A DNA stretch of 64,000 nucleotides from Paragordius varius (GCA_964247055.1 OZ176056.1:7998001-8062000), one strand, 5' to 3'; shown: positions 15,195-30,962, counted from the stretch's first letter. Program-made: numbers and translations. The notes: a model not told the origin generated them from the sequence alone.

Positions 15195-18100
15195 TCAAAG
15201 TAATTTTCTTCCCTCAATGCTAACACTTTTGTTTGGATTTATTCCGGTGCTTGAGTTGCCAAAAGAGGATCTTTTGGAAGAATTCAAAAGCTTTTTAAAT
15301 TTTTCCATCCTGCTGTTTTTAATTAAACTCAGCGGTTTTTTCTAATATTGTAAAATTAATTCAAAAGAGTCTTATAAACACAATTAACAAGTTGTTTATA
15401 GGTAATAATATAAATTTATGATGCATCTAAACAAATTTTAAATACAAACCTATTTGATCATGGAATAAATTTGGCATGAAAAATAAAATTTTTACACACC
15501 AAATGATAAATATAATATAATTATATCTATATACTTCATTATTTAAGCATAAACTGAAAGTCAAACATCATTTTTTAAAAAACACGAGACTACTGCACAA
15601 TATTTTTAATTTTTTTTATAAAATTCAAATCCTTAAAATTCATTTTAAAAAATCATGAGAATTCTCCGAAAAAAAAGATTCAATAAAAATGTTTAATTTA
15701 TAAATTTACACTCAAAAGTCTCCAGATAAATAGTTGTATTATATATATAGCTAAAAACCTGATTTATTTCAGCAACGTTAACCTTCGATTTAGGTCGAAT
15801 GACATAATCCCGGGCCGAAGGCTGAGGTATCCTAGCTCGTCCATACTTGCCTCCAATAAATGATGTGTGATGTTTTTCAATATCATCACAATCATCGTTT
15901 TGGTTAATGTTTCGTGGAATGCTTTTGAATAAATATATATATATATATATATATATATCATTTTTTGGAAAAAAAAACAATATTTTTCTATCAAACGCAA
16001 CATTTTTTCAATTGTCTTAATGTTTTCTTTGCTTGAAAAAATTTTACGTTTGCTTGAAAATGCTGTATTGAAAAATGTTGTTTTTGACCGTAGAATTGTG
16101 TAGAATATAATATTTTTTATTTTGTTTGGAAAGGAAAAATAAAATTTTTTAATATTAAAATAATTTTTTTTTGCAACTAGAAACTATACGGATAAAACGT
16201 GAAAATGTATAGATACATACTTTTTTAATGAACAATATTAAATATTGATTCTTTCAAATTTAACTTATAGTTTAAAACTGTAAAGTAAAAAATAGAGATA
16301 TGAATAATATCTTAATTAATTATGTATTTTTCAATTACAATCATTCTCCAAACACAAATTATATGGAAAAAATAAAGAAAAATATGGTTTTCTTCTAAAA
16401 AAATTATATTTGTTTTTACATATAAGTGTTCAACGATTATGTTAGCCTTTACTATCCAATATCAAAACTTATAAATTTCAAATTTTTTGTTATAAAACAA
16501 TTTATTATTATTTCCACCAATTGAGAACTATAGAAAGTTCTTTAAAAGTTTTAAATTTAATTTATAATTTTTTAAAAATATATTATAGATAACATTTTAT
16601 GCCAGAAAATGCTATTTTTCGGAAGATTATATCTAAAAATTTACAGTAAAAATTTGAAATTATACGGACAAAAAGTAAAAATATAAAGAAAAAATTTAAA
16701 TATTTTGTTTTTTTAATATAACTCATTGTTTTAAACTGTAAATTAAGAATTAGAGATATATGTTGGTTGCACAATCAATCTGTATTGATTAATATGATTA
16801 TTATGAGATAAATTAATGTTTAAAAAAGTATGGTTATCTTTTATAAAAATTATCTGTCTTTATTTTACGTTTTGTCCGTATAATTTCAATTGTAAAAAAA
16901 ACTAACCTAGCATTATTTTCGCCCGAATTTTGATGACTATGGAAATGATTCATAAGATAGTAATCTCTTTCCTCCCTTTCCTCCTTACTCATCGCCTTAT
17001 AATCGGATGGAATATTGAAGATGTGACGAGACCATTCATCTTATATATATAAAGCAAAAAATAATAATAATTTTATAAAAGTAATAAACTTATTCTAAAT
17101 TTTGAACCAAAACTTAAATTTTAATTACCAATATACCATATTTCAGTCAAAAGCAACATTTTTTAAAGCACCAACATTTTTTTAACAAACGAAACATTAT
17201 ATTTTAACCAAACGCAATTTTTTCAAGCAAACGAAATATTTTTTAAGCAAATGGATTTTTAGTTGCGTTTAAAGGAAAAAATGTTGTGTTTGCTTAAAAA
17301 AGTGTTACTTTTGACTGAAAAAATGGTATATTTTAAATAACATATAAAAATAATTGAAATTGCCATAAATAAAACTAAGAAAATTATTTAAAGCTGCCCA
17401 AATTACACAAAAAATAGACAAATTAGAATAACCAACTAAAAATTAACAAAGATTATAAATAATTTTTTTTAAATGATCCAAATAATTATTATGTAAAACA
17501 TCTATATATAAGTAAATTTATATGGAAAAAACATTTAAATTAAAGCCAAATAATATTTTATATATATCATACTATTTAATTATTATTTTTTATATTTGTA
17601 AAATCGTATGTGTTGCTAATTTATATCTTTATTCTTAACTAAACAATCCAAAATGAATTATCATAAAAAATCAGAGTAATAAAACATAGTTTCTAAATCA
17701 ACAACTTTTGTCCGACTTTTGTTGTGCATTATTTCTATAATTTTAATTTATACTGTTCGATTATGCGCCAACAAGTTCATAAGATTATATGTGATTAAAA
17801 CATAATAAAAATAAAATATATCGATTTAATATTTATTAAAAATATTTAATTTGTAATAACTCACTAATAAGTTTTCCGGCTCTAGCCTTATTTTCTTTAG
17901 TTTCTTTGGGGTGTTTATAAATGTACATGACAGCTTTACCTATTAGACTGGATTTAAGGGTTCCCACATCAACCGGTGGTAACTTTATATTGATAAATTA
18001 AAATAATGTTAAATAAACGAAATCTAAAAATTAATAAAACTAAAAAACAGTAAAAATTTGAAATCGCAAGGATAAAACGTAAAAATTCAAAAGACAAAAA

Positions 18101-24100: not shown

Positions 24101-25088
24101 TAAATTAATAAAAAATTATAAACCGTTATTAAAATGGCTGTCCTCCTCATCGTCAGATGTTGAATCGATATCTCGTCTGCTTTCGTCATTAGCATGTTTC
24201 ATGTGTCGTCTGCTGCGTTTTTTTCGTTTTAAATTGCGTTCAGGTGACTTTGATTGCAACCAATTAGAATCGTGTTGTTCCATTTCAATTTCAGAATCTC
24301 GGAAACCTTCAAACACCTGGATAGTGTAAATATTTACTGTTATACTATGCACAAGTAGATATAAAGTAAAAATTTCATCGAAAAAACAAAACATAGGAAA
24401 AAAGAAGGACTTCTATCTCAATTTTGAAACCCTAACTCTGAAATAAGAATGCAAGATTTATGGAATATAATTTGTAATTATCACCTTTTCACCAGATCCT
24501 TCACTATCCGATGAACCAAATATGTTAAGTACCTTACTGTTTAAAGTTGTAAGGCCATATTCATCTAAAAGTTCGGTCTGTCTAATATTTTCATTTAATA
24601 TTTTGGTAGGTTGGTGATCTTGCTGATTTATACTTTGTTCGACTATATCATTTAAAACCAAATTTTCGGTAGGATTAGTGCTTAATTCATTATCATTATT
24701 AATTATCGGATCAATTATCGGGATATCAATGATTTCCTCCATATTATTTGATTGTTCTAGATCCAAATAAGGTTCATTAGAGTTGTTGGATGTTTCGCAT
24801 TCATTGTGCAAAGCATGGAAATTTTGTGTAGGTTCGTTAAAAGCATTGTTCTATAAATTATAAACAAAATAATACCCAATTATTGTCATCATGATGTGGA
24901 CCAATGCTAAATATTAAGTTAAAATAAACCTATCTAAAGGTGGAATGATTGTTATCTCTTCACTTTATGCATTAAAAAAATGTATACTTTGTAGTACCCT
25001 CCTGAGTTGAATTCGTTTCTTTGATATAAGATTCCAAATCTAAAGCAAAACTTCCAATTTCTTTTACACCAACTTCGGTATCAGACAT
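15195..25088 (-). CDS. IWS1: IWS1/Spn1 transcription elongation factor (TFIIS-N-terminal domain)
   Basis: Exons 25088-24988, 24962-24930, 24906-24876, 24850-24485, 24316-24124, 23328-23134, 22579-22489, 20726-20510, 19236-19154, 19042-18991, 18779-18702, 17982-17865, 17039-16907, 15921-15759 and 15341-15195, all in phase. Motifs: [97 protein letters not shown], and C-terminal SIEGRKLL*. The first three exons are less certain. Confidence 0.95.
17136..17326. mobile_element. MITE family C (TA|CCAT..CAGTCAAAAGC; internal AAGCAAACG-type repeats)
   Basis: Inverted arms ccatatttcagtcaaaagc / cttttgactgaaaaaatgg. A second copy lies at 43484-43661 and a partial copy at about 15985-16095. Confidence 0.75.
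18265..18552. mobile_element. MITE family B copy (IWS1 intron)
   Basis: TA|cagtaaaaattggaattatacggacaaaa...ttttgtctgtataatttcagatttttactg|TA. Confidence 0.85.
19540..20070. repeat. Minisatellite, ~120-bp unit x5, in an IWS1 intron
   Basis: ttataaatcaaagtgcctaatagagatcagaat...tttatagg recurs at about 19567, 19689, 19809, 19927 and 20032. Confidence 0.85.
20111..20482. mobile_element. MITE family A copy
   Basis: About six tandem 21-bp units; the right TIR ends 27 nt from the IWS1 donor at 20509. Confidence 0.85.
20697..21290. repeat. Three copies of an IWS1 acceptor plus exon start
   Basis: gaaat(c/t)attccaatagagttttctgt recurs at about 20700, 20848 and 21250. Confidence 0.9.
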
Positions 25089-25127
25089 TAATGCCGCGCT
25101 TTCATAAAATCAGCAAAAAATTTATTT

Positions 25128-27443
25128 ATGCAAAAATCATTCTTGATACAAGGTGGAAGTGGTTATGGGTTTGAAGAAAATATTCTTTATGGCATAATCC
25201 TTGTAATCCCAACTTTAAAATTGTATACCAATTTTCAAAGATCATTAAATATTTATCTTCAATCATTCTTTTGTGGTACTATACTCATCCTGTACCTATT
25301 ATTTTGTTCGCACCGATCCAACAAATTTGGAAAAAGTAACCATTTAATCTGTTTATTAGTTCCTTTAATGCTCCTGAATACATTTAATGTAGACAGTTTA
25401 CGTGGTTGTGCCTTTTCATCCATAATATTTTTTCAAATGGCCATAATAAGTATTTTAGTTAGTACCGTTTTTTCCTTTCAAAATTTAAAGCGTAATAAAA
25501 TAATTATGCATACTATATCGCAAATTCGTCAATTCAATCCCTATAACGTCATTGATGATAAAAATTTTGTTTGGATGATACATATAAGGTTTAAAAAGTT
25601 TTATTTATTGTTCATTCTTGCCTTTACCTGTTTTAAGTATTTATTGCTTTTTCTAGTCATCATTACCATAATTTTACCACTAACTTTTCTGTTGCTTATA
25701 TCGATATCATTGTTATACTATGCATATACCTTAAAAAATTCAAACACCTTATTGCAATTTCGACTGGTTCAAAAATTCTTAACATCATATCGCTTATTGA
25801 GAAGATTTGTCATTTACCTTGCTAATCAACCTAATAATTATGTGATCAAAAAATTGTGTTTACTCATATTCGCTAATTCAATTATTACCCTATTAGTATT
25901 ATATATAGTTTGGCGGGTTTTAAAAGCCAATAATTACAAAATGTCCAGGAAACCGCTGTTGATTGGAATGACTTTGGGGGAATATTTATTTATATGTAGC
26001 ACATTTATCATTTTCCTCTATATGAGTGTAAATATCCCATTTTTTGTCCCGTCTTTTCTGACCCCTGGTCCTTTAACCAGGCAATCAAAACTACTTTTTA
26101 CGCTTTTGTTCGCTCTTTGGCACCCTATTATTTTCATTATAACAATATCCAAAATGAATGTAAAACAAAATCATATAGCTAGCAAAAGGTTATTAGCAAC
26201 CTTTTTATTTCAAACTTTAATTCTGCTTTCAATATATAAACTTTTTATCGGGCAATCGATGGTTGTTTTCATGTGGCAATATATTTTTGATGATTCTCAA
26301 CACAAAATGCATACCAAAGTTTTATTAATAGTCTATTGGGCAATAATGACTACCATATCCATCATATTTTGTTTAATAAAAACTTATAATACTAATTCCA
26401 ACCAACAAAAATCAAAAGAAAAGCAATCATCCTTGAATGCCATGATATCAAAAGCTCTTTGTTCAAAATACAAATTAATTTGCCGTCGTAAAGTATTTCA
26501 TGCAATAATAGTCCTCATTGTGGTACCTGGACTCTTTGTAGATTTACCTCTTACCACATTAGCCACAGTTGTAGCATTCGCTTTCCTTTTGGAATTTGAA
26601 CTTTTTCGTTTTTACATAATTGAAAACACATTTGAAATAAGATCACATCCCAAAAGAAATGCGTTTGCCTCTGTTAATATATCCATGATGCAAAGATTTG
26701 CTATCAAAATTAATCAAGGCTACTTATCGTTTCGTAACGGAAAAGAACAAACATGTAACGGTTTAATACTTTCTCCTTTGTATTTATTAATGGGTATAAG
26801 TTTTCCCATTTGGGCCAATTATATCAAAAGCGTTTTGACTTCATCCATTGATAATTCACAATTTTTAATATCAACTTGGTCTGGTATTATAGCTGTGGGC
26901 GTTGGAGACTCCATATCTGCCATCGCTGGTTCATTTTTGGCCATAAAATGTCATCAAAATATTTCTGACAAATCCCGTACAAGAAATCCTTTTAATTTAA
27001 TCATAAACCATATTTTGATGAAACCATTACCTACTATAAGGAGTGAAAATATAGACAATAAAAAACCCAATAAAACAATTTGTGGTTGTCTTGCTTCATT
27101 CCTGTGTCAATATTTCACGATTGTTATCCTATTATACATTATAACACGAATTAATGCAGCTAAAGTTTTAAATTTAACGTTTATTAATTATTCTCCGCAT
27201 CCAGTGTATAATAGACAATATTTTACATTGGTAAAAATTAATACCAATCTCGCATTTCAAAATTATCCACACAACAGTTTTTGGGCATCAATTATTAAAG
27301 CATCCAGTTATAAATTAATTTTTGATCCATATCTAGGTTTAACATTATTACTAAGTTCTCTCCTTGAGGGTTACACCCAAAACAATGATAATGTTATAGT
27401 CCCCGTTACCCTGTATTATATGTTAAGCGTGTTGCAAATATAA
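25128..27443 (+). CDS. DOLK: Dolichol kinase (cytidylyltransferase-family, multi-pass membrane), single exon
   Basis: Uninterrupted 771-aa hydrophobic ORF with RKVFH, LILSPLYLLMGISFPIW, GIIAVGVGDSISAIAGS, KT.CG and LLEGYTQNNDNVIVP, matching DOLK/Sec59 motifs. Confidence 0.92.
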   Translation: MQKSFLIQGGSGYGFEENILYGIILVIPTLKLYTNFQRSLNIYLQSFFCGTILILYLLFCSHRSNKFGKSNHLICLLVPLMLLNTFNVDSLRGCAFSSIIFFQMAIISILVSTVFSFQNLKRNKIIMHTISQIRQFNPYNVIDDKNFVWMIHIRFKKFYLLFILAFTCFKYLLLFLVIITIILPLTFLLLISISLLYYAYTLKNSNTLLQFRLVQKFLTSYRLLRRFVIYLANQPNNYVIKKLCLLIFANSIITLLVLYIVWRVLKANNYKMSRKPLLIGMTLGEYLFICSTFIIFLYMSVNIPFFVPSFLTPGPLTRQSKLLFTLLFALWHPIIFIITISKMNVKQNHIASKRLLATFLFQTLILLSIYKLFIGQSMVVFMWQYIFDDSQHKMHTKVLLIVYWAIMTTISIIFCLIKTYNTNSNQQKSKEKQSSLNAMISKALCSKYKLICRRKVFHAIIVLIVVPGLFVDLPLTTLATVVAFAFLLEFELFRFYIIENTFEIRSHPKRNAFASVNISMMQRFAIKINQGYLSFRNGKEQTCNGLILSPLYLLMGISFPIWANYIKSVLTSSIDNSQFLISTWSGIIAVGVGDSISAIAGSFLAIKCHQNISDKSRTRNPFNLIINHILMKPLPTIRSENIDNKKPNKTICGCLASFLCQYFTIVILLYIITRINAAKVLNLTFINYSPHPVYNRQYFTLVKINTNLAFQNYPHNSFWASIIKASSYKLIFDPYLGLTLLLSSLLEGYTQNNDNVIVPVTLYYMLSVLQI

Positions 27444-28090: not shown

Positions 28091-30962
28091 TTATATGGCA
28101 ATTTTATCGATGGCTTTAAAGAGTTGATCGCATGTCAAAGTTTCAGGTAGTTTGGTTAAGAACTGTGCCGATTGTATAAAATCCATATTCAGCAATATAT
28201 CCTCGTAAAGTTTCAGTATTCCTACACAAAAAAAAATTTTAAAATGAACCAATTACACTTCAAATTCACCCTAAAATAAATTATTATGTGTTTATTAAGA
28301 TTAAAAGTTACTTATATTTTTGTATTTTTTTAAAATATAAAATTTTGTTTAAAATAAAAATAATCCTGAGAAAATAAGCTATGCCATAAAGATATAATTC
28401 ATATTAATGAGGAGTTGGATATTAGTCCGAAAACACATAATTTATTTTTAGGGTGAATTTGAATTGTTCAGGGGTGAAATTGAATTGTAAATGGTATATA
28501 ATATATAATTAAAGGTTTTAATTTTAAATTAATTATGTACAGTAAATTTGAAGTTATACGGACAAAAATTATATATCATGAAAAATATTTTTTAACCAAA
28601 AGCAAATTACTTTCCTTGCTCCTATACAAATTAATTAATTACAATTGTAAAATACATGATGATTGATATCGTTATCAATATATATTTCTATTACATAATT
28701 TGCAAATTAATTAAAACAATGAGTTAATAAAAAAAACAAAATGTAAAAATTATAGTTATCTTTTTCTTAGAATCAAAAATTGTCTCGTTATTTTTACGTT
28801 ATATCCGTGTAATTCAAATTTTACTTTATGTTAGCTTTTGCAAGCAAGGTTAAATATGAAATAATTTATCGCCATACTAAACAACCCTAATTATAAATTT
28901 TATATCAAAATTAAATAAATTATTTAATTTTTTAAAAATATACCTTTAATAATAAAAATACCGAAAAAGTAAAATTACCTAAAGCTGTTTTAAACAAAAA
29001 AGTTTCACCATCCCGTAAAAATATATCCCAAATGCGACAAGTTATATCCAAATGAACCGATTTACTGTATATCGTGAATATCCTATAAATAATAAAAAAA
29101 ATGTAAAATTATTTATATATTTAAAAGTTAGATATATATAGACACTTTAAGACTTTTTCTTGTTTTTGTCCGCGATGACATATTGGGGTATATTTATATC
29201 TAAGAGCTTTTCAATTTTATAAATTAAATACTGTTTTGTAAGTGGTTTTAGTTAAAATTTAATTATCAAATATTGTTCTTCTGTATTAGATAATATACGA
29301 TTTGGAACCAGACAGCTCTTTTAAAATTAATTTATATCAAGTTTTTGCTGGTGAAATGCAACATTAAGGCTTATTAAGAATTACATTTTATCATAATATA
29401 TATATTTAGTTTCAATTATCATTAGCGATTTAAATCAATTTATCGAAAGTTTTTGAGATAAGGATTTGTTAAAAAAAAATTTGTTTATGCCCCTAAAAGA
29501 CTAAAGTAAGCATATATTTAAATTAGGTCTAATACCTTAAATACTTTTTAAAATAATCAAATTTTAAATCGTGCTGGGATATAAAACTACCCCACAAGGT
29601 CATGAAGTGTTAATAAAAACAAAATTGGTGGTCAAAAATAAGATAAAATACCAATCTGTAAGATATAAATCGGGTGTAAAATTGAGATTTTGAAAATGTT
29701 CATACAATGAAGGACAATTTGAGTCAAGGAATTCGGAATATAGCTCAAAATAACGTGCCATCTAACATATAATAAGTATTTATAAATATAATTATTCAAA
29801 GAATAAAATAGGGTTTAAAACCATAAAATGATTAATTTTTTATGTCATTTTAAATGGTGAATCGGCATAATTCTAGAAAAATATAAAAAAAATTAAAGTT
29901 AACCATTGTATTATATTTTTAAGTTAAATGTTTACTAATAATTTACCAAAACCCTCTATTAAAACTTATAATCAGAACCTGTATACAACATTATAAAGAG
30001 GGCAAAATTTTCACAAAACTTAAACAAATATAAAAAAATTTTTAAAATAAATTTTACATTTTCTTGATCTAGGCCATAAAAAGTTTGAAAACATGGTAGT
30101 TCCATTAAACAACAAAAACTTATGAAGGCTGGTTTAAGGTTCATATTGAGGAGCAGTATAGCGGCTATAAAGGACATACCCTGTACCTGAACATAAAATT
30201 TAAAAATGGAATATAAAAAAGCAATATATAATATAAAAAACAATGTAAAATCATTAAAAAATTTAATTTTATTCCAAAAAGTTTATATAATCGAATAAGT
30301 AATAAAGCAACTATATATTATCACCTATAATATTGTACAATATAGTACGGAAAAAAAGAACTAAACCCTAATATAAGCTATGGATTATATGGTAAAAATT
30401 GAAACTATACGGACAAAACGTAAAAATATAAAGACAATTTTTTTTCAAAAAACAACCTTACTTAAAAAGCCTAATTTTTCTCATATAATATATAAATAAT
30501 TGTATTATCAATTTACATATCAATTTTTTACTTTGCAGTTTAAATCAATTATATTTAATGCAAACATTTAAAATGTATGGGTTGCCTTTTAGGAAAAAAT
30601 ATTTGTCCTTAATATTTTTTAAGTTTTGTCCGTATAATTCCAATTCTTTACTGTATATGAGAAAATTTACTATATCGTATTAATTTTTCAAACTAAACTT
30701 TTTTTAGATATAGCATCCGTATATTTTAAATTTAAAACTAAAAAAAATATGGAATTACATAAGCCATTTCCGGATTGTACAGGGTATAAGAAATTAATAA
30801 TCGCTTAAGTGTATTATGATATGGTCCCCCGTCTTGAAAAATGGCAAGGTGTGGAAAAGTTCTACTAACATCTAAATCTAAAAGAAAATTTATAAAAAAA
30901 ATTATTTTTATTACATAAATAATGTAAAATTATAAGGGTGGAAATAAAAAACATTTAAATAA

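Follow-up and report, generated by a model that had tools for sequence, protein, structure and literature searches.

Three putative introns of 23 to 25 nucleotides at the 5' end of an IWS1 gene, and a class of similarly short introns in a hairworm genome

The 5' end of an IWS1 gene, on the minus strand of the 64,000-nucleotide stretch of hairworm DNA that was analysed (the window), carries three consecutive segments, just 25, 23 and 25 nt long and all bounded by GT..AG, in phases 2, 2 and 0. All three are probably genuine U2-type GT-AG spliceosomal introns separating four coding exons. They would be members of a class of 21-31-nt introns that is found across the genome, with introns of 168 to 1762 nt following them in the same gene. 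This was also the core reading of the initial annotation, which proposed three micro-introns in IWS1 and whose coordinates, GT-AG ends, phases, frame continuity and stops on retention proved correct in all details. The reading fits a class proven in this genome, fares better statistically than its named rivals and concerns a real IWS1 gene; the excision of the three segments from RNA, and the mechanism outlined below, are what we infer.

Excision of the three segments joins the ATG at 25088 to a 366-nt exon (Table 1), and the spliced stretch of 531 nt is open over its 177 codons. Retention of any one of the three produces a frameshift and then a stop. The ATG is the first in frame past a TGA at 25112, and at the other end of the series the TAG of micro-intron 3 ends the upstream frame precisely at the acceptor. 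From exon 1 to exon 4 the GC content rises and falls in alternation between exons and candidate introns. Immediately upstream is a 5-codon uORF (ATG AAA GCG CGG CAT TAA, 25089-25106, minus strand), the stop of which overlaps the IWS1 start codon as TAATG.

Table 1. Proposed exons and introns of the IWS1 gene, in window coordinates
Feature	Position	Strand	Length	GC	Remarks
Exon 1	25088-24988	-	101 nt	0.34	ATG 25088-25086
Micro-intron 1	24987-24963	-	25 nt	0.20	GTATAC...TTTAAT...AAAG; phase 2
Mini-exon 2	24962-24930	-	33 nt	0.33	open in frame
Micro-intron 2	24929-24907	-	23 nt	0.13	GTTTAT...CTTAAT...TTAG; phase 2
Mini-exon 3	24906-24876	-	31 nt	0.39	
Micro-intron 3	24875-24851	-	25 nt	0.12	GTATTA...TTATAAT...ATAG; phase 0
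Exon 4	24850-24485	-	366 nt	0.31	122 codons; acidic, unconserved
Intron 4	24484-24317	-	168 nt		frame continuity of 11-exon model
Exon 5	24316-24124	-	193 nt		11-exon model
Intron 5	24123-23329	-	795 nt		11-exon model
Exon 6	23328-23134	-	195 nt		11-exon model
Intron 6	23133-22580	-	554 nt		11-exon model
Exon 7	22579-22489	-	91 nt		11-exon model
Intron 7	22488-20727	-	1762 nt		11-exon model
Exon 8, first conserved IWS1 exon	20726-20510	-			weak human IWS1 match; frame continuity
Intron 8	20509-19237	-	1273 nt		11-exon model
Exons 9-11	19236-19154, 19042-18991, 18779-18702	-			introns between: 111 and 211 nt
Exon within TFIIS-N/Med26-type domain	17967-17836	-			PF08711; human IWS1 match

Judged by its conserved part, the gene is a real IWS1 homologue, with an N-terminal half that is acidic and unconserved. 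The domain PF08711 was found at 17860-17976, in the C-terminal half, with a score of 37.9 bits that lies over the cut-off. The exon that falls within this domain matches residues 651-684 of human IWS1 (E = 1e-10), exon 8 matches residues 543-572 weakly (E = 0.08-0.28), and the two matches are collinear with the gene order. Database searches were made exon by exon, with exon joins used only for tests of frame continuity; in these tests the frame of the 11-exon model remained open for 480 codons and reached the conserved IWS1 part. The introns beyond the three micro-introns are all GT-AG as well, and further IWS1 exons continue to about 15200. A local duplication of about 110 nt (20930-20820 and 20790-20700, minus strand) has put a second version of the exon 8 acceptor region, with the exon's first codons, a short way upstream of the genuine acceptor.

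The N-terminal half gave little to compare with other species. A phmmer search with exon 4 against 1.84 billion representative proteins returned 0 matches, and comparison of the N-terminus with the solved IWS1 chains in the PDB returned only noise; the end of exon 4 may resemble the acidic motifs FG(S/D)SDSE known from vertebrate IWS1 proteins. The N-terminus has no detectable homologue, so that the IWS1 introns are less firmly anchored by homology than other members of the class described below, and since it is unconserved the gene serves as a test locus for RNA-based validation and not as proof. Word searches with the conserved IWS1 exon and with the neighbouring 771-aa ORF yielded no match and no gene model or transcript from the same species. 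The corresponding search with a RhoA-like exon, a sequence too conserved to give taxonomic resolution, brought up animal Rho proteins of a generic kind only, none above 88% identity, and no same-species transcript. A search for another copy of the IWS1 5' region in the genome, or for a haplotig of it, found the region itself and nothing else.

The class to which the three segments would belong was recognised in gene families with strongly conserved proteins. All 44 contigs of the assembly (110.6 Mb) were searched exon by exon with an HMM of the Ras family. For the 49 pairs of adjacent exons that resulted, the HMM coordinates provided an estimate of intron length, which was 19-31 nt at 13 junctions, 46-86 nt at 10 and 250-3200 nt at 26. 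In eight of the short cases a GT..AG pair at the estimated length restores universal GTPase motifs, for example ..VADIEVDGKT/VELALWDTAGQ.. and ..ERYRAITSAYYRGAVGALL.. across the junction. The pieces that flank a 23-nt intron in a RhoA-like gene align to residues 7-53 and 52-178 of a mollusc Rho, gapless at the junction, and an 8-residue insert in the same gene, missing from the mollusc homologue, corresponds to a stop-free GT..AG segment of 24 nt. A Rab11-like gene has three consecutive introns of 25, 24 and 25 nt, a Rab18-like gene (G000:C5:5361143-5361730) has four of 21, 22, 22 and 22 nt, and alpha-tubulin has one of 29 nt directly after the ATG. Among the actin genes, one is without a 5'-end intron and the split ones have introns estimated at 76-105 nt.

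Altogether, 14 micro-introns could be verified by homology in Rho/Rab genes and alpha-tubulin, with lengths of 21, 22, 22, 22, 23, 24, 24, 25, 25, 26, 28, 29, 29 and 31 nt. They start with GTA or GTT and end with TAG or AAG, and near the 3' end most of them contain TAAT (6), TAAAT (4) or one of TTAAC, TTAC and AAAC (3). With the Ras-family and actin junctions taken together, intron lengths in this genome have three modes, at 21-31, 46-105 and 250-3200 nt. On the evidence of the restored protein sequences, introns of 21-31 nt are a real class in this genome, often present in runs and found beside ordinary and long introns.

Several observations were made in passing on the Ras-family genes. The stop-free, in-frame 24-nt GT..AG introns of the RhoA-like gene (G000:C5:8097580-8097987) and the Rab11-like gene (G000:C3:8184111-8184326) would translate as FLHIMMKV and GTVFLIYV, which a gene finder would take for 8-residue insertions amid otherwise universal sequence. 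In the Rab18-like gene, TIG and VDF are separated by six additional in-frame residues (NNNYIV, 18 nt), which may represent a still shorter intron or a true insertion. Two other Ras-family matches (G000:C10:1742396-1742872 and C11:1307111-1307587) are identical in length, score and open frame, and may represent a duplicated segment or uncollapsed haplotype contigs.

The IWS1 segments resemble the verified micro-introns in several features. Their lengths lie inside the verified 21-31-nt range, their first six nucleotides (Table 1) begin with GTA or GTT, and they finish in AAG, TAG and TAG. Their interior is AT-rich as in the class, with a GC of 0.12-0.20 vs 0.31-0.39 for the exons, and their arrangement as a run of three has counterparts in the runs of the Rab18-like and Rab11-like genes. 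Their branch-like motifs (TTTAAT, CTTAAT and TATAAT) contain a putative branch A, which is at positions 16, 16 and 18 counted from the donor end, with distances of 9, 7 and 7 nt to the 3' end. The TAAT of micro-intron 1 is 8 nt before the 3' end, a spacing also seen in a 25-nt intron of the Rab11-like gene; by itself the TAAT motif is weak evidence, being common in AT-rich DNA and present in its exact form in only 6 of the 14 verified micro-introns.

By its sequence, the intron motif is the usual branch consensus, yUnAy, in an AT-rich form, and the best U2 snRNA gene in the assembly has the canonical branch-binding site, GUGUAGUA. The initial annotation had envisaged a spliceosome adapted to micro-introns. 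Because the motif fits yUnAy and the U2 snRNA is canonical, nothing points to a need for special splicing machinery, and that proposal, though possible, is left without support. The ordinary major spliceosome would instead remove the IWS1 micro-introns by intron definition: U1 would read a minimal GTA or GTT donor, U2 would pair with a TTAAT or ATAAT branch site, its A being 16-18 nt into the intron and 7-9 nt short of the 3' end, and the first AG past the branch would be used, with no polypyrimidine tract. Matches to U2 snRNA are themselves numerous in the assembly (46 matches, 35 of them over the Rfam cut-off, 47 to 178 bits) and are clustered in arrays at G000:C3:257000-527000, C2:11.95-11.99 Mb and C5:12.73-12.79 Mb, which may be a large diverged U2 family or pseudogene arrays.

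The GC content of the window is about 24%, and GT..AG pairs and TAAT words are therefore common in it. The path test looks for the longest open path that begins with an ATG, leads into exon 4 and crosses no more than three GT..AG segments of 20-31 nt. When the 300 nt upstream were dinucleotide-shuffled, 3.5% of the shuffles gave a path of 165 nt or more, as did 2.9% of pieces drawn at random from the window, figures that fell to 0.4% and 1.2% once TAAT was required. In clearly non-coding 300-nt controls such a path was present in 142 of 20,000 (0.7%). The real path scored 0.46 bits per codon, as against 0.03 +/- 0.13 for the chance paths, none of the 142 reaching 0.46, on a codon log-odds scale that was trained on ORFs of at least 110 codons (from the window and 50 other loci) and in part reflects GC content. 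Since the control paths are rare and none is equally coding-like, the pattern at IWS1 exceeds chance.

The coding signal is also specific to the frame. Exon 1 scores +16.8 bits in the proposed frame vs -11.9 and -6.0 in the other two, mini-exon 2 scores +3.7 vs -11.5 and -14.1, and mini-exon 3 has +4.5 bits in the proposed frame; all alternative frames of exons 1-3 lie below the proposed one and all but one of them are negative. Exon 4 reaches +49 bits in frame, and the three micro-introns have a negative coding score in all frames.

With introns of up to 450 nt allowed, the region admits 4030 open GT-AG models, including one that skips exon 2 and one with a single 223-nt intron. Micro-intron 3 is part of the six best-scoring among the models listed; the best-scoring models all contain it together with exon 1 and exon 3, and vary in the inclusion of exon 2 and in an optional upstream exon that is antisense to the neighbouring ORF. 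Exon 2 might, then, be no exon, in which case the donor at 24987 would be spliced to the acceptor at 24907 across one intron of 81 nt and only micro-intron 3 would be real, either in the main form or in an isoform. The frame-specific score of exon 2 speaks against this skip, and so does the rarity of comparable structures by chance: among 2294 GT..AG segments that occur naturally in non-coding DNA and measure 60-110 nt, only 12 could be split into two 20-31-nt introns and an open mini-exon with the motif, and none of these 12 had the GC (0.33) and log-odds of exon 2. The skip is improbable as an account of the locus, even with a mini-exon of 33 nt that can be left out without loss of frame, a model that is open and scores 21.4 bits vs 25.3 for the three-intron model, and a genome in which introns of 46-86 nt are the second common class (10 of the 49 Ras-family junctions). 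Exon-2 skipping could occur as an isoform.

A different account places the start of translation at an internal Met of exon 4 (MEEIIDIP, at about codon 37 of that exon), or the start of transcription downstream, so that everything upstream would count as promoter or 5'UTR, with the three segments unspliced or irrelevant to coding. The unconserved N-terminus would suit such a start, as would the ATG at 25088, which has a weak context, is overlapped by the uORF and is 39 nt from the ATG of the neighbouring ORF on the opposite strand. However, exon 4 is open for 36 codons upstream of the internal Met, its frame opens precisely at the acceptor TAG, and exons 1-3 have a frame-specific coding signal, all of which argues against a start within exon 4 and makes it an unlikely reading. 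A single 223-nt intron (25073-24851) joining GAA/GTTGGT to exon 4, with the mini-exons as chance open stretches, is very improbable: it is frame-compatible (phase 0 to phase 0) and GTTGGT is the donor of exon 11 in this gene, but it would hold three GC-richer, frame-consistent blocks where the other IWS1 introns have a GC of 0.12-0.26, and the non-coding controls rarely had an open path as long and never one as coding-like.

The identity of the animal was judged from its mitochondrial DNA. The mitochondrial contig (C44, 15,693 bp) encodes a COX1 in which TGA is read as sense, and contains palindromes with arms of 80-208 nt, 95-100% complementarity and loops of 0-7 nt, many of them perfect and most of them inside long mitochondrial-code ORFs. 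Long perfect inverted repeats within mitochondrial protein-coding genes are a hallmark of Nematomorpha (PMC6649704), and the contig displays it. On the same contig, a 52-nt hairpin is repeated as an array that lies between 6750 and 7450. Nuclear GC, at about 24%, is near the value of 26.9% for Gordionus montsenyensis (10.1101/2023.06.26.546503), and the assembly of 110.6 Mb falls below the 200-300 Mb of sequenced hairworms (10.1101/2024.06.11.598342). The Rho, Rab and tubulin proteins of this genome are not fast-evolving; on this ground and on that of the mitochondrial palindromes a myxozoan origin was rejected, as was a ciliate origin on the ground of the standard genetic code.

Among 51 metazoan genomes, introns of less than 30 bp were reported in two animal lineages, Dicyema and the myxobolid Myxozoa, in a study whose main text does not mention hairworms (PMC13644364, September 2026). 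The lineages named for such introns in the initial annotation, dicyemids and ciliates, are both published, and the myxobolids were missing from it (PMC13644364). Myxobolid introns have a median of 27 bp in Henneguya salminicola and 22 bp in Thelohanellus kitauei and Myxobolus rasmusseni (PMC13644364). Myxobolids and the hairworm are alike in being parasitic animals with clustered GT-AG spliceosomal introns below 30 nt, conserved A residues just before the AG, no polypyrimidine tract and a canonical U2 snRNA. In the myxobolids, however, nearly all introns are this short, compact genomes are the rule and little more than GTa..AG is left of the signals, whereas in the hairworm the micro-introns are one of three modes, the same gene may have introns of up to 1.8 kb, and a T(T/A)AAT-type motif is usually clear. 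The myxobolid introns were proven by Iso-Seq, while those of the hairworm are known here from the genome sequence alone.

According to the summary in PMC13644364, Dicyema japonicum is likewise a parasitic bilaterian with introns below 30 nt and otherwise conserved gene structures; there, the shortening is genome-wide and the genome compact, whereas the hairworm has a subset of such introns in a repeat-rich genome of 110 Mb. The hairworm lineage, as judged by the mitochondrial palindromes (PMC6649704), belongs to Ecdysozoa/Nematoida, unlike the dicyemids. Ciliates (Paramecium, about 25 bp; Stentor, 15-16 bp) share with the hairworm a similar length (about 25 nt), an AT-rich genome and stops or frameshifts upon retention, but they are not animals, have only such introns and often have reassigned stops, whereas long introns and the standard code coexist with the micro-introns in the hairworm (PMC5014332, PMC13644364). 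The ultra-short introns of humans (43-65 nt, SPF45-dependent) are also short, with truncated polypyrimidine tracts, and are spliced by the major spliceosome with variant 3'-site factors; they are about twice the hairworm length and rare (PMC4463651, PMC8363638).

Taken with these systems, the present findings make it probable that introns below 30 nt exist in a third, independent lineage of animals, the Nematomorpha, which unlike dicyemids and myxobolids would keep them as a discrete class, frequently in runs near the 5' end, within transcripts that also have introns of one to several kb; a single spliceosome, apparently a canonical one, would then cover a nearly 100-fold range of lengths per pre-mRNA. 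IWS1, with 25, 23 and 25 nt and then up to 1762 nt, would be one example of this. The locus adds little beyond another example, and the interest is mostly in the class. Confirmation of the class by RNA would add an ecdysozoan lineage to the list, would mean that extreme intron shortening needs neither a compact genome nor the loss of long introns, and would provide a natural system for the pairing of splice sites 21-31 nt apart beside kb-long introns. There would also be consequences for annotation. Standard gene finders usually have their minimum intron length set above the size of a micro-intron; in this genome they would get the 5' ends of many genes wrong and render stop-free 24-nt introns as 8-residue insertions.

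The longer introns of IWS1 had also been remarked upon in the initial annotation, as kb-long and filled with transposable elements. The first part is borne out by introns of 1762 and 1273 nt, together with others of 795 and 554 nt. The second part was not shown: intron 8 contains tandem arrays (118 nt x4.5 and 21 nt x6.9), and a whole-genome DNA search with two long-intron stretches, a weak negative in that very common words were skipped, found no dispersed copies or family. In that search the stretch from intron 8 had no further genomic copy and the one from intron 7 had two weak partial matches elsewhere.

Head-to-head with IWS1 lies an intronless ORF of 771 codons (25128-27443, plus strand) that encodes a multi-pass membrane protein and is free of TAA and TAG, as expected with the standard code in use. 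It had been labelled DOLK, for which a protein-language-model search provides a lead (dolichol kinase, score 0.92, 18 of 30 matches), while Pfam and two sequence searches returned nothing on its identity. Downstream of this DOLK-like ORF, an exon-sized ORF on the minus strand (29959-30243) matches the RabGAP-TBC domain (PF00566, E = 2e-7) and belongs to another gene.
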